From positions 2,170,001 to 2,234,000 of the forward strand of contig OZ218953.1 in the NCBI GenBank assembly GCA_965112735.1: a stretch of 64,000 bases of DNA. Direction: 5' to 3'. This DNA comes from Phaeosaccion multiseriatum. Lineage: Eukaryota; Protista; Ochrophyta, other classes. The notes beneath the pieces are model-generated. The model was not told the DNA's origin and searched no databases. It worked only from the letters and a program-made list of their open reading frames with translations. The position numbers and the translations under genes were made by a program. Shown here piece after piece: positions 11,501 to 56,011 of this stretch (position 1 is the stretch's first letter; each line of letters begins with the position of its first letter).

Positions 11501-11771
11501 CTCGTTGTGCCTCAGGCCGAGGGAGGGGCACAAGACATACCACCGCCCAACATGATTGGGGCTGTCCCAGACCACTCTGAGCATCCCCGGGACGAGCTGC
11601 GCAAGAGCATCGTGGACCAGGCCATCAAAGTTGGCTTCCCCTGCAGGATATTTGAACGGGGTGACAAGGGCTGGCGCCAGGTACCTTCGGATGGTAAGTA
11701 CGTGCGCGGGAAGGAAGGAGTGCATCCACCCACCCTTTGGATCTTTCGGTGTGTGTTGTTGTTGCTGTTGG

Positions 11772-11854
<83 letters not shown>

Positions 11855-11941
11855 GCTGTTGTTGTTGTTGTTGGTGGTGGTGTTGGTGGTGGTGGTGGTG
11901 GTGGTGGTGGTTGTTGTTGGTGTTGTTGTTGGTGATGTTGG

Positions 11942-11982
<41 letters not shown>

Positions 11983-12005
11983 GCTGTTGTTGTTGTTGTT
12001 GTTGG

Positions 12006-12051
<46 letters not shown>

Positions 12052-12100
12052 GGTGGTGTTGTTGTTGGTGTTGTTGTTGCTGTTGTTGTTATTGTTGTTG

Positions 12101-12173
<73 letters not shown>

Positions 12174-12181
12174 CGTCGTCG

Positions 12182-12228
<47 letters not shown>

Positions 12229-12334
12229 ACTGTTGTTGCTGTTGTTGTTGCTGTTGTTGGTGGTGGTGGTGGTTGTTGCTGTTGTTGTTGTTGTTGTTGT
12301 TGGTGGTGGTGGTTGTTGTTGTTGTTGTTTTTGT

Positions 12335-12416
<82 letters not shown>

Positions 12417-12418
12417 GG

Positions 12419-12450
<32 letters not shown>

Positions 12451-12452
12451 GC

Positions 12453-12486
<34 letters not shown>

Positions 12487-12496
12487 GTTGTTGTGG

Positions 12497-12537
<41 letters not shown>

Positions 12538-12566
12538 ATTGTTATTGTTGTTGTTGCTGGTGTTGT

Positions 12567-12600
<34 letters not shown>

Positions 12601-12602
12601 GC

Positions 12603-12651
<49 letters not shown>

Positions 12652-12652
12652 G

Positions 12653-12683
<31 letters not shown>

Positions 12684-12696
12684 CTGTTGTTTTTGT

Positions 12697-12745
<49 letters not shown>

Positions 12746-14610
12746 CGTCGTTGTACCCTGTTGTTGTTGTTGTTGTTGTTGGTGGTGGTGGTTGTTGGTG
12801 TTGTTATTGTTGTTTTTGTTTGTTGTTGTTGCTGTTGCTGTTGTTGCTGTTGTTGTCGCCGTTGCTACCCTTTTATCTTCTGTGCGCCCACATCACTTCG
12901 TTTTTAAAAGGGAGGTTCTTGCTCTGGCCTTGCCTTGCTTGGACTGTTTCATGTTCAATTGTCCCTTCACATCACCTCCTTCCTGACTTCTCCTGGGCCT
13001 TTGCCTGTCTGGCTTGTCTTGTGTCGCAGGTACGTGGTTCTCTAAGCTGGCGAGCTTCACTTCTATGGTGAACAACGAGTTGGTAATCCCGCCTGATGGT
13101 ACGGCAAAGAGGTTTATCGTGCAACGGTTGCTGGAGGGTGGGCGTGAAGCGGGCCAAGCTAGAGCGCAGGTCCTGGGAGAGGAGGCTACTAAACAAATGG
13201 CGTTACAGAAGAAATTGAAGGACGGCGTTCAGGTGCAAGTCCTCCCCGGTCGCTATTTCAAGACCGTGGTGCGGGGCCATTCACAACCCCTTCTGGCGAT
13301 GAGCGTAAAACAACTCGACGCACTGGAGGAGGAGCTGGACGTGCAGATATGTGAGAAGCAAGCAAGGACGATGTTGGCCGGTGGAGACAAGGAAGCTAAG
13401 GCGAAGGAGGAGAATAAGAAGGAGAACAACATGACGAAAGAGGAGGAGGAGGACGGCATGGACAGCAATGATGGGAAGAAGCTGAGCGGGGAAGTGGAGG
13501 CGAAGAGGAAGAAGAAGAAGGAGGAGGAGGAGGACGAGGAGGAAGGGCGCGAGGAGAGTGAGGACGACGAAGAGGAGGAGGAGAAGCCGCTTCTCCGGAT
13601 CTCACGCGAGACAACAGAAACGGTTGGAAGTGTGAGGGTTTTTCTTGGCAAGTGGACGGCAAGCGAGACGAAGGATGCTCAGGTGACTTTACACACGGAC
13701 GTGGGGGTTCAAATTGCCAACCTGGAAGACGACATCAGAAAATGCTTCAACGAAGTAGAGCGCAAGAAGCGAATAATAAAGGAGGCGGGTAAGTGGTGGC
13801 GGTGGCTTTGTGCTGTAGCTGTTTCAAGCAAAAGGGGAAAGGAAAGGAAAGGAAAGGAGAAGGGACAAGGAGAAAAGAAACAAATGAGCGGGGGCGGGGA
13901 AGGGGAAGGGTGGTGGTGGTGATTTTAAAATGTTGCTCTCTCCTCTTACTGCTCTTCTCTTCTCTTCTCCTCTCCTCTCCCCCCGCCTTCCTACGACCCT
14001 ACCTACCTACAATGCAGCGATTCGAGATGCCTTTCCCCGAAAACTCAAGGTTTCGACTCTGGATATCACAGGCACGGTCACCGTGACGCCAGGTGGAGAG
14101 CAAACGCGACACAAAACCAAGCTGAACGAGGATGTGTGGGGTAGCCTGGCCGAGTGGAAGCGGGTGTACCTGAAGGAGATTGGCTTAGTGAGCGAGCGGG
14201 CGGGCCAGTTTAAAACCCGACAGGTGAAGGTGAAAACGTCCAAGCCCGGTGCTCACGAGGCGTCCAGCAAAGCCCTTGGTGTGATTGACTTTATGGATGA
14301 TGGCGCTCCCCCGGTCTATACCATCAATAGCTCCCTCGCCATGGACGACCAGACGGGTTTGGCTGCCATCCCTCCTGACGCGCGGTACTCTGGCACGGTA
14401 TGGGGAGGTCCCAAGCCTTCAGAGGAGAGGATCAAGCCGTGGCTGTGGCAGTATGATGAGACGGGCCTGTGGACGGAGGGAGAGTGTGACGGCAAGTGGC
14501 TGATTTTTGAGAATGAGGACATGATCGACAAAGTGTGGGAGGTGGTGCGGTACCACACCAAGATGGGTAAGACACAACACACAAAGCACACACTCACACG
14601 CACAAACACA

Positions 14611-15704: not shown

Positions 15705-17363
15705 TCAAGAGCCCGTCAAGATCGAGGTCGAGGGCCGCATGGGGAGGAGGAGCTTCCTTACGCAGATGGGCCTCGGCTCGTGTCGGTTCTCCCCCACATC
15801 CACCTCCAACTCTGAAGCCGAGAGTGTCACCGTCCCCGCTGTGGCGGTTGAGGCAGTCATCCTCCTCATTGCCCTCCTTCTTCCCCTCCTGTTGCTTCCC
15901 TTGCTGCAAGTCTGCCGCTCCCCCTCCTCCTCCCCCTGCTGGTCTGAGTGTTGGTCTTGTTGCTGCTGCTGCTCCTGTATCACCAACTGCTGCTGCTGGG
16001 AGGGGGCAACGAGCAAGCCCCTCCGCTGCGCTTTGGAGAGGAAAGAGTCCAAGGCAGACCGCAGCTCATTGGCCAGCAGCACCAGAGCCCCTTCTCTACA
16101 CACACTCGTCAGCGTGTCGAGCAGCGGCTCCACCGAAGCTTGCGAGTAGAGTAAATCTGCACACACCACCAGGCTGAAGCGCCCATCGTCCTCGTCCTCT
16201 TCATTGCCCTCCTCCCGCCATTCGTCAAACTCACCGCTACTCCTCCTCCTCCTCCTCCTGCTGCTGCTACTACTACTGCTACTACTCGCGAGTAGCTCCA
16301 TCTGCTCTGGGGATACAGTCCCCCATTCCAGCGGCAACACTGTCACCTGCCCTACTGCTCCTCCTCCTCCTCCTCCCCCCCCCCCTCCTCCTCCTCCTCC
16401 TTCTGCCGCTACTGCAGATGATGAGGATGAGAAAGGTACCGATCCTTCACCGCTCTTCCCTTGGCCTGCTGCTGTATCCCCAAGCACTGCATCTCCGCTC
16501 GAGCTCGATGTGGGCCCCTGTGTCTTTCCTCCTCTCTCCCTCTGCCGCTGCTGCTGCATCACCAACTGCTCCAGCTGCTGCTGCTGCTGCTGCTGTCTGA
16601 CCTGCGTCAGACAAGCAGTCACGTTCCGCTGCAGGAGAGGCACCACGCTAGGCTTGTCCGTCGTCACGACGTCCCATCCAAGCAGTGCCATGACAATGGA
16701 CACCAGACCCACTCCTGTCGACCCCCAAAGAGACGAGAGGCGTTGGGAGAGGGAGGAGGAGGAAGAGGGATGGAAGGAGGAGGAGGAGGAGGAGGAGGAG
16801 GAGGAGGAGGAGGAGGAGAAGGAGGAGGAGGAGGAGAGAGAGGAGAAGGGATCAGGAGGAGAACACGCACACACAGGCACACCCACGCACACCCACACGC
16901 ACACACACACACACACACACACACCCATCCACACACACACACACACACACCTGCACCTAGCTCCAGAACTCTTGGTCTGATGGGCAAGCCCAGCTCGTGA
17001 GCCCTCGTCACCAGATACCTCGCCACAATGACTCCGGTGGGCCAGAGGTACAGGCCTATGCCTCCCCTCTCGCACAACTGGGGGGAGAGGAGGAGAGGAG
17101 GAGAGGAGATGAGCCCGACTGAGTTAAAACACATCGACAACTGTATGTCTCTCCCCATCCACTGCCATCCCATCCCGTCCCATCTCGGCGTCAGTCCTGA
17201 CACGTACCTGCGCCAGTCTGAGGGTGACGATGGGCTGCAGCTGGGTGGTCTCCTCTTGCCCTCTTCTTCCTCTTTGCGGTAGACGTAGCTTCACCTCCGC
17301 CTCCTCGAATAGCGAGGGCGCCTCTCCGTCTGCGTCTGCTTCCTCTCCCCCCCCCTTCTCCTC

Positions 17364-17400
<37 letters not shown>

Positions 17401-18705
17401 GTACAGTGTACCGCCTGTGCCGGCCTCGCTTCCTTCACGGAGAGCCGTAGGAAGGGCTTCCGATGCCCAACCCGGTCCCCCTGCTCCCGCCCCCCCCCCT
17501 CCTCCTGCTGCTGCTCCTGCCCCCCCCCCTCCTCCTCCTCCTCCTGCTCCTCCTGGCGCTCGTGCTCCCTCCACCCTCCCTGCTGTCCCTGCCCCTTCCT
17601 TCTTCGTACTTCCCAAATCTGCACGTCGCCAGCCGAGTACACGGGGTGATGCTCGGTGCTCGGAATGACCCTCCTCTCCAAGCCCCGCTCCGACAAGAGC
17701 TCTTCAAACCGAGCCCTCGGGTCAAAGCCGGGGAAGTAGCGGTGCTCGTACGATAAGAGGACGGTGGTTTGTGGTCCCGTTAGCTTGTCAATCGCCGCCA
17801 CCAGCGGTTCCAGAGGGTATAGTTTGGGCAGCACGCAATCGGAGATGAGGATCAAGTCCACAGGTGGGTTCAATTGGGTATCTTGACCTCCCCAATCGTA
17901 GCAGCAGACGTGCAGCGATTCCGGTGCGATCCCGCACTCGGTCTGGCAGCGTTGGGCATTCTCTTGCAGGAGGAAGAGAAGCTGCTGCTGGTCGGTGAGG
18001 TACACCCTCGCGGCTCCCAGCACTCCGGCCGCGAGTCCTGTTACCCCCGTACCTAAGAAAGGATAAACGCAAGTCGGGGTTAAAGCTATCAGGGAGGGGG
18101 GGGCGGGCGGAGTAAGGGGAGTGGAGTGCTGTTTAATTAAGGATACGAAAGTCCTCGGCTATGAAATGCTTCGATTAATAACAGACACCTCAGGCTCTTT
18201 GGCAAATCGACGCCCATGCGACATCAGCATGCTTCTGGCTAAGAAACTGGACTCTGTGGACCGATACCCTCCCTCCTGTTTACGTCCCTTACCCACCTGC
18301 GCCAAGGTCGACCACCGACTTTCCTTGCAGCTCCCCATTGCCGAACCTTCGCTCGAGGTACTTGCACAGAATCACGGCCCCGGCCCACACCACTGCGCCC
18401 GTGCCCAGCGCCCTCTCCTCCCCGTTGGGCTCTTGCCGCAGTCGCAACGTACAACCACCTATCTGGAGCTCGAACAACCTGGCTTGGCTCTGGCTTTGAC
18501 GCCACCCCAGGCTCGACGCCATTGATCGTACCATCGGGCCCCTCCTCCTGCCCCTGCTGCTGCAGACACCCTCTCCATCCTGATCGGCTGCTGCTACTCT
18601 AAGAGCCTCTGCCGCCCCTTGCCGTAGCAGTAGGGCCAAAGGTGAGGGCGGAGGGAGTGGAGGGGGTTGGAACACAGATCCCTCGCAGCCATCGTTGGTT
18701 CCCAT
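15705..18705 (-). CDS. SAM-dependent lysine methyltransferase with two tandem METTL21/EEF1AKMT-type (Methyltransf_16) domains
   Basis: Domain 1: GTGAVVWAGAVILCKYL...KSVVDLGAGTG...VYLTDQ...YDWG...DLILISDCV...LLSYEHR. Domain 2: GIGLYLWPTGVIVARYL...RVLELGAGVGLVSI...VTTDK...LEWG...LVVCADLLY...VLLANELR. Four exons. The start codon is uncertain (18705, or downstream near 18520-18535). Confidence 0.8.
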
Positions 18706-21800: not shown

Positions 21801-22875
21801 GTCCCCCCGTGTGATTGACATGAAGCGCCAGGGTAAGTAAACCTATTTATTATCCTGTGGGGCACTTCTTGTTCCCCTCCCCCTCTCCCCTCCCTTTCCT
21901 CTCTCTCTCTCTCTCCATCTCTATCTCTGTCTCTCTCTGCCATCTGCCCCCCTTCTCTCTCCCTGTCCCTCTCGCTCTGACCTGTCTTCCTCTCCCTTCT
22001 CCCCCCCCCCCCACCGTCTCTCTCTCTCTCTCTCTTCCCCCAGTGGACCGAGGTGACTTCGACCTCGCACTTGAGTCTTTCGTGCAGCAGGTACATCATC
22101 ATCACGAGCAAGAGGAGCAAGAGGAGCAAGATGGGGGTGGGGTGGCGCTTGAGTCCGCACTGTTCCATCAGGTGGGAGGGAGAGAGAGAGGGGGGGGGAG
22201 AGAGAGAGGAGGAGAGGGAGGGAGAGGGAGGGAGGGAGAGAGAGAGGGAGAAGGAGAGGGAAGGGGTGATAGAGGCAGGGAGAGGCAAGAGAGGCAAGAG
22301 AGGCAGAGAGAAAGGAAAAAGAGCATATTCTTGCGTAGGATCAACAAAAGAGAGATGGCAGTGGACCTCTCTCTCTGACCTCCGAACTCTGACGTGGCAT
22401 GACGGACAACTAGGGGCAAGGGGGGGGGTCCTTTTCTGTCTACTCTCATCTGATCGCTGTTTATCATCCATTGCCATCCGTTGCCATCCATTGTCATCCT
22501 CCCCTCCAGGCGTTGCGAGCCTGCAAGGAAGGCAACCGCCCCGCGCATTGCTTGGCTGTGCTCAACCTGATGGACGACCAATGGTGAGACCAGCGGGCCG
22601 ATATATCGATCATGTCGATATCACTTATCGATACGCTTATGTTTCGATATTCATTGAGGTCAATAAGCTCAAACCTCCTCATCCTTTCCTCATTCCTTCT
22701 CCTGCTCCTCCTCCTCCTCAGTGTCCCAATTACCGCGGAAGAGCAGCTTGATGCTATTGAGCTACTTTCACTCAGCGACAGCGCCACAGCTCTGTCACTT
22801 CTCGAAGAGGTGAGCGTGTGCGGCGATTGGGCAGACAGGAAGATAGAGATGGAGGGGGAGAGAGACAGGGAGAGA

Positions 22876-28000: not shown

Positions 28001-30225
28001 CAAAGACTTATCGAGAAGGACGAAGCAAAAAGACGGGAGAGACAGAGTGCGCGTGCTAAAAGCATGTCCGTGAGATCAGCTCGGCCCACCCACCCCAACC
28101 CCACCCTGAGCCCACCCGCACCCCCCATCCCCCCACTCACATCCACTCACTCACCCACCCACCCACCCACCCACCCACCGCACCTTGGCGTGATGCCAGC
28201 AGCGGCCTCTAACAACACCATGACCTTGCCCTCCAAGGCTGCTGCTCGGCCCCTCTCTTCATCCACGGCCGCCTGCCCCTCGGTGTGTGTTGAGGAGCCG
28301 ACGGAGGCGCCGCACTGCTTCAGTGACTTGGTCTTGGTGTTCTTGCTCTGCATGGAGAGCGTGTAGGCTTCTGAGGCCTGGGAGTGAGTGAGTGAGTGAG
28401 TGAGTGAGTGAGTGAATATGCCACATGCAGTGCCATACGGCGATGTTCTTTACCTGAAGAAGCTTCTGCACGAGTTTCTTGAACATCTGTTGCAGAAAGG
28501 GCAGGGGCGCCACAGCCGCGAAGGATGCCACAGCTTTGCACACCGCCTTAGCGGCCTGCCCCCCGGGGCGGTGAGTGGGGGGGGGGGAAGGGGTGCGTGT
28601 GTATTGGGGGGGGGGGGGGGGGGAAAGGTAAGGGAAACAACACCACCAACAAAGCCAAGCGCCCTTCACCCTTGACCCACACACTTCTCCCATCCATCCT
28701 CTCTCATCAGCATCGTGTCAACCAAACGGGCCCCGGCGGTATCAGACAGTCAGTCAGTCAGTCAGTCAGTCAGTCAGGTCAGTCAGCAGTCGGTCAGTCA
28801 GTCAGTTAATCAGTCAGTAAGCCAGCCAGTCAGTTAGGAACGACCACACACCTGTGCCTCCTGCGATTGCGGTGTGGGGCCCGCAGCGTGAGCCTCGAGC
28901 ACTTGCAGAAGCTTGGGAAGGAAGCGGGTTGAGGTGACGCTCACCATCTTAAGGGCAGACGGTGTCGAGGAGGGGGCAGAGGAGGCCTGTGGGCATGGAT
29001 GGTGGTGCAGGGTAGGGTATTGGTGACAAGATGGAGAGAGAGGGTAGGGTATTGGTGACAAGATGGAGAGAGAGGGTCGGGAAAAGGTGACAAGATGGAG
29101 AGAGAGGGTAGGGTATAGGTGACAAGATGGAGAGAGAGGGTAGGGTATTGGTGACAAGATGGAGAGAGAGGGTAGGGTATAGGTGACAAGATGGAGAGAG
29201 AGGGTAGGGTATTGGTGACAAGATGGACAGAGAGGGTAGGGTATTGGTGACAAGATGGAGAGAGAGGGTAGGGTATTGGTGACAAGATGGAGAGAGAGGG
29301 TAGGGTATAGGTGACAAGATGGAGAGAGAGGGTAGGGTATTGGTGACAAGATGGAGAGAGAGAGAGGGTAGGGTATAGGTGACAAGATGGAGAGAGAGGG
29401 TAGGGTATTGGTGACAAGATGGAGAGAGAGGGTAGGGTATTGGTGACAAGATGGAGAGAGAGAGGGTAGGGTATAGGTGACAAGATGGAGAGAGAGGGTA
29501 GGGTATTGGTGACAAGATGGAGAGAGAGGGTAGGGTATTGGTGACAAGATGGAGAGAGAGGGTAGGGTATAGGTGACAAGATGGAGAGAGAGGGTAGGGT
29601 AGAGGTGACAAGATGGAGAGAGAGGGTCGGGTATTGGTGACAAGATGGAGAGAGAGGGTAGGGTATTGGTGACAAGATGGAGAGAGAGAGTGTAGGGTAT
29701 AGGTGACAAGATGGAGAGAGAGGGTAGGGTAGAGGTGACAAGATGGAGAGAGAGGGTAGGGTATTGGTGACAAGATGGAGAGAGAGAGTGTAGGTATAGG
29801 TGACAAGATGGAGAGAGAGGGTAGGGTAGAGGTGACAAGATGGAGAGAGAGGGTAGGGTATTATGTCACAAGATGGAGAGAGAGGGTAGCTTCCTCCCTC
29901 CCTCCCTCCCTCCCTCCCTCCTCCCCCCTCCTCACCTCATCCCCCAGCAGCTCCTCTCCGACGCCCCCTGTGCCGCCCCCCGCCTCCTCCCTTATCCCAT
30001 CCACAAGCACGCTCAGGCCCTCACAAATGACAGCGACGAGCTCCGGATACCTCTCGTCCGCCATGGCGTTGGCCAGCAGAGGCGCTAGCTTGCCGAAGGA
30101 TGTGGCCACGTCTGTCGGGCTGTGGCAAACCGACGGGAAAAGAGCCCAGAGCTGGGCTACTCGGACCTGTGTAGAGGAGGAGGAGGAGGGGGAGGAGGAG
30201 GAGGAGAAGGAGGAGGAGGGAGGGG

Positions 30226-49954: not shown

Positions 49955-50141
49955 ATGGATGCGGACGACCTTGGGAGAGGACCAACCCCACCTGCGCGAC
50001 AAGAGCAAGAGGATGATGACATGGATACACAGCACCGCAATCAGGAGGAGCGGCAATACCATCCAGGCCTTCTCCCGCCTCCAGCGAGCAGTGGGTTCGG
50101 GGCCGCACAGCAAGAACCACAGCAAGGAGCAATAACATCAT

Positions 50142-50173
<32 letters not shown>

Positions 50174-50183
50174 GTAGCATCAT

Positions 50184-50224
<41 letters not shown>

Positions 50225-52066
50225 CCAGCAGCAGCAGCGGGGCCAGCAAGCGCCTCGCCATCTGGCGCAACTATTTCCCAATCAGCAGAAACCCAAGACG
50301 CATCCGAGTCTCCCTCAATAGCATCGCCCACAGCAGCAGGACGAGTGAGGAACTCTCGTATCTGTACCGTTCGGGGCTGCGGGAGATACGCTGTCAGGTA
50401 AGAGCTGATGTGGGCAGAGCACTGTTGCCTCTCCTCTGCTGCTCAACATGCCCTGGACTGTGAACCAGTCAGTCTCGAGCTCACCCAGCCTCTCCTGTGA
50501 ACTCACCCTGCTCTCTCTCCACCCTGCTGTCTCTCTCCACCCGTTGGTCGTCCATTGCCAACAAACGCACACAGGGTAAGTGCTCCCAAGTGGGTGGGGT
50601 GGAGCGTTGCCTTTTTTGTGTCTGAACCGCTCAGTCTTCCCTCAGTACAACCTCACTGTCCTTTCGGCCTTTGGCGTCGCTTTATCTTGCCGGCATGCCC
50701 CCATATCCCACACTGTGCGCCGATACCCCCCCCTCCAACCACCACCACCACCACCACCACCACCACCACCACCACCACCACCTTTATCTTCCCTCACGCC
50801 CGGCTTTTGTGCCCCTTGCTGTTGGCGTGTTGCCCGTCTCGAACAAATCACTGGTCGGCCATCCCCCTACAGGGTAAGTACCATCGCTTGTGCAAACATC
50901 ATTCCACCAGAGTTTGTATTGTGCTGTGTTGTGTTGTGTGATGCTCCTTTGGGATCAAGAAAAAAACGGAAACATTTAACCCCTGCTTGCTTGCTGCGCC
51001 CCTTCCCTTTCCGCGCCCTTCCCCCTCGCCAACATCTTCTTCTTGTCTCTTCATCAAGGGTAAGTAGCGCGAAGATGGAAGGAGCAAGCTATTGTCCCGC
51101 CCTTTTCCCCACATCGTCCCATTTGCTTTGCTTGTGTGTGCGTAGAGCCACCCTGCGCCCTTACCCTCTTTTGTGTGCTGCCCTCCCTCCACTCCGCTCT
51201 CTGGGCTTACCTGGTGGCCATTTACCCTCCCCAATCCTCCTTCCATCTGCGCCAACCTACGTGCCCACCTGCCCACCTGCCCACCTACCTACCTACCTAC
51301 CTACCTACCTACCTCCCACCTACCTACCTACCTCCTACCTACCTACCTACCTACCTACCTACCTACCTACCTACCTACCTACCTACCTACCTACCTACCT
51401 ACCTCCCTCCCTCCCTCCCTCCCTCCCTCCCTCCCTCCCTCCCTCCCTCCCTCCCTCCCTCCCTCCCTCCCTCCCTCCCTCCCTCCCTCCCTCCCTCCCT
51501 CCCTCCCTCCCTCCCTCCCTCCCTCCCTCCCTCCCTCCCTCCCTCCCACCCACCTACCTACCTACCTCCCACCTACCTGCCTGACGATTCCATCGCTTCC
51601 CTTTTGTCCGCTGCATCTCTTCTCCTTCTTGCCTTTCCGTGCTACGACACTCCCCTTCTCCAACACACGCTGCAACGCATGACTACTCAGGGTAAGTAGA
51701 GAGAGTAGCGTACATTACGCTTACCATTTGTGCATCCAACCCTGTCTGCAGCGTCAGGTTTGGGACCGCCCTCCGTTCTCGGCGGTCGGGCAGCTACGGT
51801 GGAGATCCGCGGACCTTCCCTGACCTGATTTGACTGGCCTGACTGACTGATGGTTAAATGACTGACTGAGACTCACTGAGACTGACTGACTGATTGCTTG
51901 ACGGACTGACAGACTGATTGGTTGGCTGACTCTCCCTCTACAAGTTTCTCTCTCCAAAGCGGAAGGTGATTCTCTTCTCTGTTGAAGAGGGAAGATATAG
52001 AAACCAAACTTTAGTCTCACCACATACATCCCTCCGTACTCGTGCCCGCTGCTGCTGCTGCTCCCA

Positions 52067-52100
<34 letters not shown>

Positions 52101-54641
52101 TACACATACACACACACACGCAAAGGGAATATGTATTAGTCATGGAGGTGTCGGGAAGCGCTGCCGCATAGACGGCTGCGGCAAGCAGGCCAAGCAGGCA
52201 GGCTTGTGTGTCCGGCATGGGGCCCGCGTCACGCACAAGCGCTGTCGAGAGCCCGACTGCCGCCGGATTGCCAAGCAGGCAGGGGTCTGTGTGCGGCACG
52301 GCGCGGTCGTCGTTTCGAGCAGGTGCGATGCGACTGGAGATCGGTCTCTCCTCGCCCCCCTCTCCCCCCTCCCCCTCTCCACCCCCAGCCCACATGCTCA
52401 CCCCCCATCGACACCAAACCCAGACAAGGCGCCTGAGCATTCAGTTGCATGTGGGCCGTGATGATTGGGACCCAAATCTTGATTGTGCTCAGTGTGCTCA
52501 GCGGGCATGCTGTGTTTGTCTCTTCTCTTACTGATTGATGACACCTTCCAACATGTAGAGTCTCCAATACCCGACATCGCGCCCGTCCTCCTCTCTTCTC
52601 ATCTTCATTTTCATTTTAGTTTTATCCGTTTGATCATGTTTCCTCCGTACGTGTCCTCCTCCTCGTGCACCCCCCCCCCCCCCCCTTCCCTGTGTACCCA
52701 CACCCCACTCCCTCAACAGGTGCCGCAAAGAGGGCTGTGTCAAGTACCCAGTTAAAGGCGGCTTCTGCATCGGCCACGGCGGTATCCGCAGCGGCTGTCG
52801 CGTGGAGGGGTGTGGCAAATACGCCGTATCCAAGGGGCTTTGCGCAGGGCACGGAGGGGGGCGCAAGGGCAAGAAGAAGGAGGAGGGCATGACGAAGACA
52901 TTCTGTACGGTGGACGGCTGCGAACGGACGCTGACAGAGGCAGACGAAGACGCGGGCTTAACGCGCTGTGCTGTGCACTCGGAGCTGTCCCTGCCTTCTT
53001 CTTCCAGTGGAGGGGCCGGAGGAGGCGGGAGAGGGAGCGTGTCTGCTCTTTCTGCTGCCTCCAATGCCGATGGTGCTGGTGCCCAAAAACTCCTGTCCAC
53101 GATGGAGATACGGCATCCCGATCAGCAGCAGCAGCACTCTTCGGGAAAGCATATGCTGGACGAAGTGATATCACGCCGCCCGCGGGGGGCGGCCAGGGGG
53201 CTAGGGGAAGGGGAAGGACGAGGGGGGGAGGGGGGACTCGCACCACGGCGTCCTTCGCTTCTAGGTCTGCTCTCGACGGGGAGCGGGGGGCGGGCATCAT
53301 CACCCTCTTCCTTATCGTCGTCGACCGCCGTTGCAGGACATGGGGGGAAGGGGAAGAGGAGGATGTTGTCACGTTCGATGCTCGGATCTACTGCTGGCAT
53401 GCAGCAGGGGCGGCAAGGGGCAGGGGGGGGCTATGGGATGATCAGTGGTGGTGGTGGTGGTGTTGGGAATGACATGCAGGAAGATGGAGGAGGAGGAGGA
53501 GGAGGAGGAGGAGGAGGAGGAGGAGGAAGAGGAGGAGGAGGAGGAGGAGGAGGAAGAGGAGGAGAGGGAGGAGGAGGAAGAGGAGGAGGAGGAGGAGGAG
53601 GAGGAGGAGGAGGAGGAGGAGGAGGAGGAGGAGGAGAAGAAGAAGAAGGAGGAGAGGGCAAATGGCAGTACGTCGGGGCCACAGCAGTTGGAGCAACAGC
53701 AGGGAGGATGGCCAAGAGTGTGAGAGACGAGTCAACGGCATCAGCAGGGGGAGAGAGAGAAAGGAAGGTTGGGAGGGGTGGGCGGTCGTCACGGGGGGGA
53801 GAAGGAGGGGCCGTGGCCAGTCTGTGGCCAGATGCATCACCAACGTTTGCTCCTCCTTCCACGGCGGCTGACCGCTTGGGAAGCCCAGCGGCCGGGCACC
53901 ATCCGGAGTGGGCGGAGACGGGCCGTGGAGAAGTGTGGCAAGGCGAGACCAGCGGGGGCGGCGGTAGTGGTGGTGGTGGTGGGGGTGGTGGGGGTAGTGG
54001 TGGTGGTAGTGGTGGAGTTGGGGTCGTCAGTAGTGGCAATGTCAACGCCAGCAACAGGAGGACTCTCTCCCCAAGAGCAATGCGAGAGGGATTGCAGGTG
54101 CCAGCAGTGCAGGGAGGGGACATGAGGGGATTCGGACGCAGCACCGGAGTAGCAGGCATGTCCGGAGTGGTTGGAGTGGTTGCTTCCTCCTCTGGCGCTA
54201 CGCTTGGGGCCGCGGCTCCGGACAGTGGCACCGTCACATATGGCGGCGGGGGAGGATCGACAAACGCAGCAGCATCAGCGGCGGCGACAGCAGCAGCAGT
54301 AGCAGTAGGGAGGGGTGCGTCGTTCAATGTACCAGGAGGATCGAGCTTTGACTACCCGACGACGAGTGGCTCGGCGGATATGAAGCGCTGTTCCATCCCC
54401 AGCTGTCATCTCTGGGCCTTTAGAGGCCACCTCTGTGTCAATCACGCTGTCCTGTTTGGCATGCAGCTTGGGCGAGAGGCGGACCCGAACAGCAGCAGCA
54501 GCGGCAGCGGCGGCGGCAGTCTTAGGGTGGACGTGGCTTCTGGGGGTGCTGCTGCTCGAGGGCGAGAACAGATGCGGACGGGCTTTGATGTGATTGCAAT
54601 GAATGAGGACACCATCACGTCCAATTCTCAACCGATGGGGG

Positions 54642-54672
<31 letters not shown>

Positions 54673-54717
54673 CCACCACCACCAGCAGCAGCAGCAGCAG
54701 CAACAACAGCAGCGGCA

Positions 54718-54753
<36 letters not shown>

Positions 54754-56011
54754 CCACCACCACCACCACCACCACCACCACCAGCAGCACCAGCACCAGC
54801 ACCAGCAGCACCAGCACCAGCAGCACCAGCAGCAGCAGCAGCAGAACCACCACCACCACCACCACCAGCAGCAGCAGCAGCAGCAGTCACCGCCGCCACG
54901 ATTTAACGACCACTTCCTCAGCGGGCCGTTTCAGGACAATAGTCGAGGAGGCAACAGTCGTTATAGGGGCAACTTGGGTGACCTTGCCGCCCAGGAGCGC
55001 TACCGGGTCGAACAGCAGCGTCACGAACATCGCTTACAGCAGATGGAGCTGCATCGATTGGAGATTGAGCTGGAGCAAGATCACCAACGCCACCACGTGG
55101 AGCTGTGGGGACGGGAGCCGGAGGCCGGCGCAGAGCATCATTGCTCCCGCGACGACTGCAGCGCTCGGCATCCTCCGACGCTGGAGACAGTGTCACAAGG
55201 GACGCGAGGGGGAGGAGGAGAAGGAGGAGGAGGAGGAGGAGGAGGAGGAGGAGGAGGATTAGCAGGAGGAGGAAGAGGAGATGGGGCGAGCAGTGCAGTC
55301 TATGACATGCATGCTCAGCCTGCTGCTCCGGTTACCCCTGCCTCGGCGGCTGCCTCGGCTGCTGCGGCTGCTGCGGCTGCCATGCGAGAGATTGCCACGG
55401 ACCTTGGAATGCTCGTGCCCATGGAGGAGGAAGATGACCACTTCCACGACGGAGGAGGAGGGGGAGGAGCAATAAAACTAGAAGGGGCGGTGGATTTCGG
55501 GGCGCAGGGGGGAGGAGGAATGACTGGAATGGCGGGGGATTCCAAAGATGGTGGTCCGGAAGGTGGAGGAGGAGGGCATATTCCGTGGCAGCAGCACGGG
55601 TCACCTCTGTACGCGGCTCAGCAGCATCCTACTCCCCCGCCGGGGGATGGGAGTGGGCTTGGTCGGAGCATTGCTGTTGACCCGAGCAACTTGTCAGCGA
55701 CAGGCTTCTTGCTGCGACAGGAGCAGAGAACAGCCTCGTTGGGGTTGCCCATGGGGGTGCCGATGGCAACTAACGACGTGCTGGTGACACGGCAGCAGCA
55801 GCAGCAGCAGCAGCAAGAGGCAAGGCGACGAAGGGAGGATGGAGGAGTTGATATGGTTATGGATCCGTCGGACCAAGGTTTCGGGGCGTTGTCCGCCTCC
55901 GGAGCGAGGGTCGGAGGGTTCGATGGGCCGTCTGCAGGGAACAAGAATAATGGGGAAGGTGAAGCGGGAGGGGAGTGGATGGGAGACTCACACGAGAGGC
56001 GGAGGGGTTAG
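49955..56011 (+). CDS. WRKY19-like tandem C-x4-C-x9-C-x2-H zinc-finger protein with long Gly/Gln/His low-complexity regions (putative transcription regulator)
   Basis: Repeats CTVRGCGRYAVRGGICISHG, CRIDGCGKQAKQAGLCVRHG, CREPDCRRIAKQAGVCVRHG, CRKEGCVKYPVKGGFCIGHG, CRVEGCGKYAVSKGLCAGHG, plus a later CSIPSCHLWAFRGHLCVNH. Exons 49955-50397, [four 1-nt exons], 52126-52322, 52720-56011. Confidence 0.85.
50575..51691 (+). other. Four putative single-nucleotide (G) micro-exons at 50575, 50873, 51059 and 51691
   Basis: Each is AG|G|GTAAGT preceded by pyrimidine/CA-rich sequence. Four G's exactly restore the frame and finger spacing between exon end 50397 (phase 2) and exon start 52126 (phase 0). Confidence 0.7.
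51285..51580. repeat. Compound (CCTA)n/(CCCT)n microsatellite
   Basis: Directly visible, between putative micro-exons 3 and 4. Confidence 0.95.

Follow-up and report, generated by a model that had tools for sequence, protein, structure and literature searches.

We analysed 64,000 nucleotides (nt) of DNA from Phaeosaccion multiseriatum (assembly GCA_965112735.1, contig OZ218953.1, positions 2,170,001-2,234,000, forward strand), hereafter the window, in whose coordinates all positions are given. It is eukaryotic nuclear DNA of ~57% G+C, rich in microsatellites and with GT-AG introns, and the proteins encoded in it are full of homopolymer runs. The subject of this study is a plus-strand gene for tandem zinc fingers of the WRKY19 type (Pfam PF24906; E = 3.2e-14 for exon 2 and 2.6e-11 for the start of exon 3), with exon 1 at 49955-50397, exon 2 at 52126-52325 and exon 3, of 3.3 kilobases (kb), at 52720-56011. 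The gap of 1,728 nt between exons 1 and 2 splits one finger, the first in the protein, and contains four composite sites at which a single G stands between an acceptor AG and a donor GTAAGT. A sequence-only reading of this DNA had proposed that these four Gs are consecutive 1-nt exons that complete the finger. The layout considered here is the following (a slash marks a splice boundary):

49955 to 50397, plus strand: exon 1, from the ATG to ...GCT GTC AG (phase 2), with donor cag/GTAAGA
50398 to 50574, plus strand: proposed intron 1, 177 nt, gtaaga...cacag, with CCAAC at 50558-50562
50575, plus strand: first proposed 1-nt exon (G), context cacAG/G/GTAAGTgc
50576 to 50872, plus strand: proposed intron 2, 297 nt, gtaagt...ctacag, with CGAAC at 50840-50844 and a (CCA)n repeat inside
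50873, plus strand: second proposed 1-nt exon (G), context tacAG/G/GTAAGTac
50874 to 51058, plus strand: proposed intron 3, 185 nt, gtaagt...atcaag, with CCAAC at 51029-51033
51059, plus strand: third proposed 1-nt exon (G), context tcaAG/G/GTAAGTag
51060 to 51690, plus strand: proposed intron 4, 631 nt, gtaagt...actcag, with CCAAC at 51660-51664
51691, plus strand: fourth proposed 1-nt exon (G), context tcAG/G/GTAAGTag
51692 to 52125, plus strand: proposed intron 5, 434 nt, gtaagt...gcaaag
52126 to 52325, plus strand: exon 2, starting aag/GGA ATA TGT and ending AGC AG/gtgcga
52138 to 52139, plus strand: alternative TAG acceptor (tattag/), 14 nt inside exon 2
52326 to 52719, plus strand: ordinary intron, 394 nt, gtgcga...caacag, phase 2, splitting an AG/G Arg codon
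52720 to 56011, plus strand: exon 3, with fingers 4, 5 and 6 and low-complexity sequence, to the stop codon

Exon 1 encodes a low-complexity N terminus and then the first half of zinc finger 1 (C-TVRG-C-GRYAV-R...). The open reading frame (ORF) that includes it, 49955-50401, ends in ...CTVRGCGRYAVR, followed by the TAA within gTAAga. Exon 2 starts with GGA ATA TGT ATT AGT CAT GGA GGT, encoding G-I-C-I-S-H-G-G, which supplies the second half of finger 1, and continues with fingers 2 and 3. In exon 3, ~1,000 residues made up mostly of poly-G, poly-Q/H, poly-S and poly-A lie between fingers 4-5 and a divergent sixth finger (54389-54445). Under the proposed layout, five of the gene's six introns would sit within one run of seven Gs (G7) of the messenger RNA (mRNA). 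On re-reading the sequence, the end of exon 1, the start of exon 2 and the four single Gs were all located where the sequence-only reading had placed them, and its five segment lengths were reproduced. The largest of these, which it had called repeat inflated, owes 328 nt (51255-51582) to an (ACCT/CCCT)n microsatellite.

The composite 9-mer, AGGGTAAGT, starts in the gap at 50573, 50871, 51057 and 51689, always on the sense strand. The motifs and their positions are direct observations, as are the frame arithmetic and the family fit given below. The whole window holds five copies, all on the plus strand, against an expectation of 0.32 on both strands, and none of 100 window shuffles contained five or more; the fifth copy, at 21830, is where a different coding exon ends in the usual way. 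Arithmetic from the window expectation gives ~0.004 copies for the gap and a chance of ~1e-11 of finding four there. A site in which AG directly abuts GT, AGGTAAGT, did not occur in the window. Beyond splice signals, neither the five segments nor the sequences flanking the four sites showed significant similarity to one another. Thus, the common 9-mer appears to be a maintained signal and not a copied repeat, and a recent tandem duplication or repeat element was ruled out by the same dissimilarity.

Each composite site also carries the signals expected of an acceptor. The motif C[CG]AAC, with a background of 1.8 per kb in the window, lies 14-30 nt 5' of every composite AG (at 50558, 50840, 51029 and 51660), a set of four placements out of four whose chance occurrence we estimate at a few in a million. 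The sites would therefore bear acceptor signals besides donors. A similar motif, CCAAC or TTAAC, precedes by ~30 nt the acceptors of two homology-supported introns in the neighbouring methyltransferase gene; thus, a C[CG]AAC-type motif is plausibly the branch-point motif of this organism. The upstream tracts and segments are rich in pyrimidines (fraction 0.55-0.77); the sequence-only reading had described a pyrimidine/CA-rich tract before each G. It had given YAG as the triplet of its general motif; YAG is present at three sites, while site 3 has AAG.

As donors, all four composite sites read G/GTAAGT without a mismatch, whereas the other supported donors in the window are looser (GTGGGT, GTGTGT, GTGCGA and GTAAGA). 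The five segments, 177-631 nt long, are intron-like in size, other introns in the window measuring ~230-390 nt. The last acceptor, the aag at 52125, is the first AG past a CT/CA-rich tract and has CTCAC at -44.

Local RNA structure was rejected as a common feature of the sites, with site 4 alone folding better than shuffled sequence (hairpin at 51682-51746, -19.7 kcal/mol, z = -3.07, with CAGGGU pairing to ACCCUG ~45 nt downstream). Two other pairings were recorded in the gap. Intron 4 has a non-simple inverted repeat of 16 nt (51069-51084 and 51237-51252, 94% complementary), beginning 10 nt past the donor, that may have a structural role or mark the two ends of a small element inserted there. 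In addition, 24 nt of TG-rich sequence in intron 4 (51121-51144) are 83% complementary to the CA-rich final acceptor region (52107-52130). This pairing could mask the acceptor at 52125 until intron 4 has been removed, or could simply reflect complementary microsatellites.

To follow the reading frame, exon 1, a number n of Gs, exon 2 and exon 3 were joined and translated. With one or four Gs the frame stayed open for ~1,312 codons, whereas with zero, two or three Gs a stop codon appeared within ~5-16 codons past the junction. Direct joining of exons 1 and 2 thus shifts the frame, as the sequence-only reading had maintained, with a stop 15 codons on; of the G counts from 0 to 4, solely 1 and 4 stay in frame.

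Canonical GT-AG paths through the gap were then enumerated from strong donors and any AG. Two kinds of path alone were free of stops and brought no foreign residues into the finger: those with a single G, whichever of the composite sites supplied it, and the one with all four Gs. No longer internal exon preserved the finger; cassette exons with their ends at these donors were rejected, each adding at least 29 junk residues, and so was a 4-nt exon, there being no AG at the position needed. The claim of the sequence-only reading that 52125 was the only nearby acceptor did not hold, because the TAG at 52139 is also in frame with exon 1 with no micro-exon included. Exon 1 joined in this way to 52140 is open for 1,306 codons, and its product is devoid of G-I-C-I, hence of the third zinc-binding Cys of finger 1. 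The same acceptor is also in frame with three Gs.

The choice between one G and four is informed by the zinc-finger family. The five complete fingers outside the gap are all C-x4-C-x9-C-x2-H. With four Gs, finger 1 reads R-G-G-I-C with C-x9-C spacing and scores 30.6 bits against PF24906, ungapped, over 23 residues on 23 profile positions; with one G it reads R-G-I-C with C-x8-C spacing and reaches 17.6 bits, with a deletion. The gathering threshold of this profile is 27 bits. Thus, the reconstructed finger shows the PF24906 pattern C-x4-C-x9-C-x2-H, with G-C and G-x-C, and scores above the threshold.

Homologues were taken as the best 150 from an exhaustive HMMER search of 1.84 billion representative proteins with exon 2. 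Among their fingers, the spacing is x4/x9 in 964 and x4/x8 in 3. At spacer positions 7 and 8, whose residues are created or put in register by the extra Gs, Gly occurs in 64% and 93% of the homologue fingers, respectively. The distinction that the sequence-only reading had drawn between x9 spacing with four Gs and x8 with one is therefore borne out by both profile score and family. Four Gs restore the frame and the canonical finger together, and four is precisely how many composite sites there are. Within the finger family, the closest named relative comes from the diatom Skeletonema.

On these grounds, we give a probability of roughly 0.6 to the reading in which the gap consists of five GT-AG introns and four 1-nt G exons, removed stepwise with one G kept at each step. 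We infer the splicing at all four sites, and its order, from the arrangement of the signals. The four-micro-exon finger first proposed from the sequence agrees with the frame, the path enumeration, the Pfam scores, the family spacing and the branch-point-like motifs; what it loses is the claim of a sole acceptor.

Each composite site would comprise a branch-point-like C[CG]AAC, a pyrimidine-rich tract and (Y/A)AG/G/GTAAGT, and would act initially as a 3' splice site. With a perfect donor directly after the G, the fresh exon end would at once be a 5' splice site: the ligated end (...CAGG/GTAAGT, later ...GGG/GTAAGT) would become the donor of the next intron. The five introns would be removed in succession, as in recursive (ratchet-point) splicing, and, with the donor offset by +1 from a ratchet point, one G would be retained at each step. 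The U1 footprint spans positions -3 to +6. It would overlap the acceptor AG here, so that one site could not be used simultaneously as acceptor and donor, which suggests that removal of the introns is ordered and probably co-transcriptional, in the 5'-to-3' direction. The mRNA would read GTC AGG GGG GGA ATA TGT, encoding V-R-G-G-I-C, and the product would have 1,312 amino acids, with a finger 1 of C-x4-C-x9-C-x2-H like its five sister fingers. Whether inclusion of all four Gs would be constitutive, through serial re-splicing in which each ligation adds one G and remakes a consensus donor, we rate as a question with even odds.

Two origins can be imagined, both speculative. Repeated one-base slippage losses in a G7 run beside a splice site may each have been offset when an AGGGT within an intron was recruited as an exon; alternatively, introns may have been gained repeatedly at one insertion hot spot.

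Several points weigh against the chain of four 1-nt exons. One G alone also keeps the frame, and x8 fingers do exist, rare as they are (3 of ~1,000). The in-frame TAG acceptor at 52139 permits an mRNA with no micro-exons. The final acceptor, an aag after a CA repeat, is weak, and short G runs in the assembly may have been miscounted. The literature searched contains no precedent for four 1-nt exons in a chain, and the prior of such a chain is therefore low. The spliced junction with 0-12 inserted bases had no match in metagenome and metatranscriptome contigs; no near-identical protein was present among the 1.84 billion representatives searched by HMMER with exon 2 (best identity, 53%); and the protein, metagenome and assembly collections searched yielded no transcript, no second copy of the locus and no orthologue with an intronless V-R-G-G-I-C.

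Other searches gave similar results. Word-index protein searches with exon 3 returned no orthologue, swamped as they were by its low-complexity runs, and exact ORF look-ups returned no transcript or orthologue. A search for the locus in metagenomes gave one match of 33% identity and no orthologue, and an Rfam scan had no match. The literature search yielded isolated 1-nt exons, adjacent micro-exons of at least 5 nt and zero-nt recursive sites and no run of 1-nt exons, in concordance with the lack of precedent already noted by the sequence-only reading.

Among the other explanations, the one that survives best, unlikely as we consider it, is that each transcript includes one G, from any of the four sites, and that the remainder of the gap is spliced out as a single intron. 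The product would be V-R-G-I-C with C-x8-C spacing, and the sites would be redundant. This explanation requires only a documented phenomenon, a single 1-nt exon; a single G does restore the frame, and the three x8 fingers among the homologues show that such spacing occurs. Its product, however, scores below the Pfam cut-off that the x9 product exceeds (17.6 and 30.6 bits, respectively, against 27), departs from a family in which x9 outnumbers x8 by 964 to 3, and loses the Gly-Gly register. Furthermore, the regenerated donor would have to bypass up to three equally strong acceptor/branch-point sites.

Slightly less likely is a mixed or regulated output, in which transcripts would include from zero to four Gs, only the 1-G and 4-G forms being productive and the others degraded, so that the locus would act as an expression gate, the switch envisaged by the sequence-only reading. 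The premature stops produced by zero, two or three Gs, ~5-16 codons past the junction, fit this view, and so does the competition between U1 and 3'-splice-site factors for overlapping nucleotides that such sites must entail (PMC8605326). As far as regulation is concerned, however, it is pure speculation, and the near identity and strength of all four sites favour constitutive use.

We consider it improbable that, in the productive mRNA, exon 1 is spliced to the TAG at 52139 with no micro-exon, the copies of AGGGTAAGT being decoy, U1-binding or unproductive sites. In that case, the mRNA would not contain GGAATATGTATTAG linked to exon 1 through Gs. The 1,306 open codons from 52140 speak for this splice, as does the fact that TAG is a better acceptor triplet than AAG. 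Nevertheless, the G-I-C-I-S codons at 52126-52140 would then be non-coding despite their exact match to the family pattern G-[VLI]-C-x-x-H, the AAG at 52125 provides the first AG to follow the CT/CA tract, and no explanation would be left for exactly four composite sites with branch-point-like motifs or for the canonical finger that four Gs produce.

The least probable explanation is an artefact or decay, that is, a one-base homopolymer error (e.g., a GGG at 52125-52127 that is truly GGGG) hiding one 1.7-kb intron, or a frameshifted relic of finger 1 with motifs devoid of function, a view favoured by the fact that quality at G runs is vouched for by the assembly alone and that the organism was not found in the databases searched, but opposed by the atypical x8 finger that the corrected single intron would yield, by the four perfect 9-mers with placed branch-point-like motifs that would go unexplained (chance ~1e-11) and by flanking exons that are both open and finger-like.

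If the chain of four 1-nt exons is real, it would be the first case in any genome of single-nucleotide exons that follow one another, four of them back to back, and would mark a new extreme of exon-intron architecture; a splicing ratchet that advances one nucleotide per step would extend recursive-type splicing beyond animals. The spliceosome would be defining neighbouring introns that have practically no exon to separate them, and would do so several times in a row, and the locus would offer a natural test bed for the ordered reading of overlapping 3' and 5' splice-site signals. It would also join 1-nt exons and recursive splicing, which until now have been handled apart. Single 1-nt exons are already known; a chain of them would be new with respect to the literature searched, a novelty that is as yet unverified. 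Aligners and gene finders cannot recover such structures, so that out-of-phase intron boundaries beside homopolymer runs may hide further cases annotated as frameshifts or pseudogenes.

Elsewhere in the window, a lysine methyltransferase gene (Methyltransf_16) occupies 16600-18550 on the minus strand, with introns of ~230-240 nt and long low-complexity inserts; the closest relatives of its product are 53% identical and come from Logan run SRR23274482. A (TGT)n microsatellite of 1.1 kb and 364 copies (11754-12856) explains why composition and skew are outlying at 12-14 kb, and a 32-nt unit, AGGGTAGGGTATTGGTGACAAGATGGAGAGAG, forms a tandem array of 27 copies at 29009-29889, the matches amounting to 93%.

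The arrangement can be compared with several known systems. Introners resemble one another within a family and have target-site duplications or terminal inverted repeats (PMC9860276; 10.1101/2020.10.14.339549). The possible gain of several introns at AG/G-type sites in a marine-protist-like genome recalls them, but an introner origin was rejected, given that the five segments have just splice signals in common and that the sole inverted repeat is the internal 16-nt one of intron 4. The fungal [D1,2] stwintrons are serial or nested U2-type introns in which the G and the T of the outer donor are separated by the inner intron, and the mRNA gains nothing (PMC12403724). Ordered removal and a G/GTAAGT at the junction are common to both cases; the stwintron model was discarded, however, because excising any inner segment here joins G to G (then GTAAGT) and not G to T.

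A closer parallel is found in the recursive splicing of Drosophila, whose ratchet points consist of a polypyrimidine tract and an AG abutting GTAAGT, serve as acceptor and then as regenerated donor, and act stepwise from 5' to 3' (Duff et al., 10.1101/006163; Joseph et al. 2021, PMC8605326). The composite acceptor-then-donor site with GTAAGT would be the same in kind. In Drosophila, however, AG and GT abut and nothing is retained, whereas here one G stands between AG and GT and would be kept; host introns there are tens of kb long (typically >10 kb) and belong to animals, whereas the gap here, in a protist, measures 1,728 nt. Given this length and the G present between AG and GT at all four sites, these are not zero-nt ratchet points.

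Single-nucleotide exons are established in plants. The one in Arabidopsis APC11, an A, is efficiently spliced and has been experimentally verified (Guo and Liu 2015, PMC4674806), and Vps55 contains a conserved plant micro-exon of 1 base pair, also verified experimentally (PMC11096116). Like the exons proposed here, they lie between two GT-AG introns and are missed by gene finders, and in plants they are constitutive; they are single exons, however, and form no chain, and the nucleotide in APC11 is an A instead of a G.

The nearest counterpart is the validated 1-nt exon of Fusarium CYP621A, an AG/G/GT in which the G falls within a Gly codon of a length-constrained motif (Nelson and Syed 2026, PMC12940212). 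That exon was inferred from out-of-phase flanking exons and fixed motif spacing, with support from Sequence Read Archive reads, 20 orthologues and one intronless relative (PMC12940212). It differs in being a single micro-exon between very short introns, whereas four in series are proposed here from the sequence. The slippage origin considered above would, speculatively, extend a proposal of the Fusarium authors (PMC12940212). Both cases share the AG/G/GT core, and both were recognized on the same grounds, out-of-phase exons and motif spacing. The features by which a 1-nt exon is recognized are present at this locus: flanking exons that are out of phase, AG/G/GTAAGT with intron signals around it, and a protein motif that requires the added Gs.

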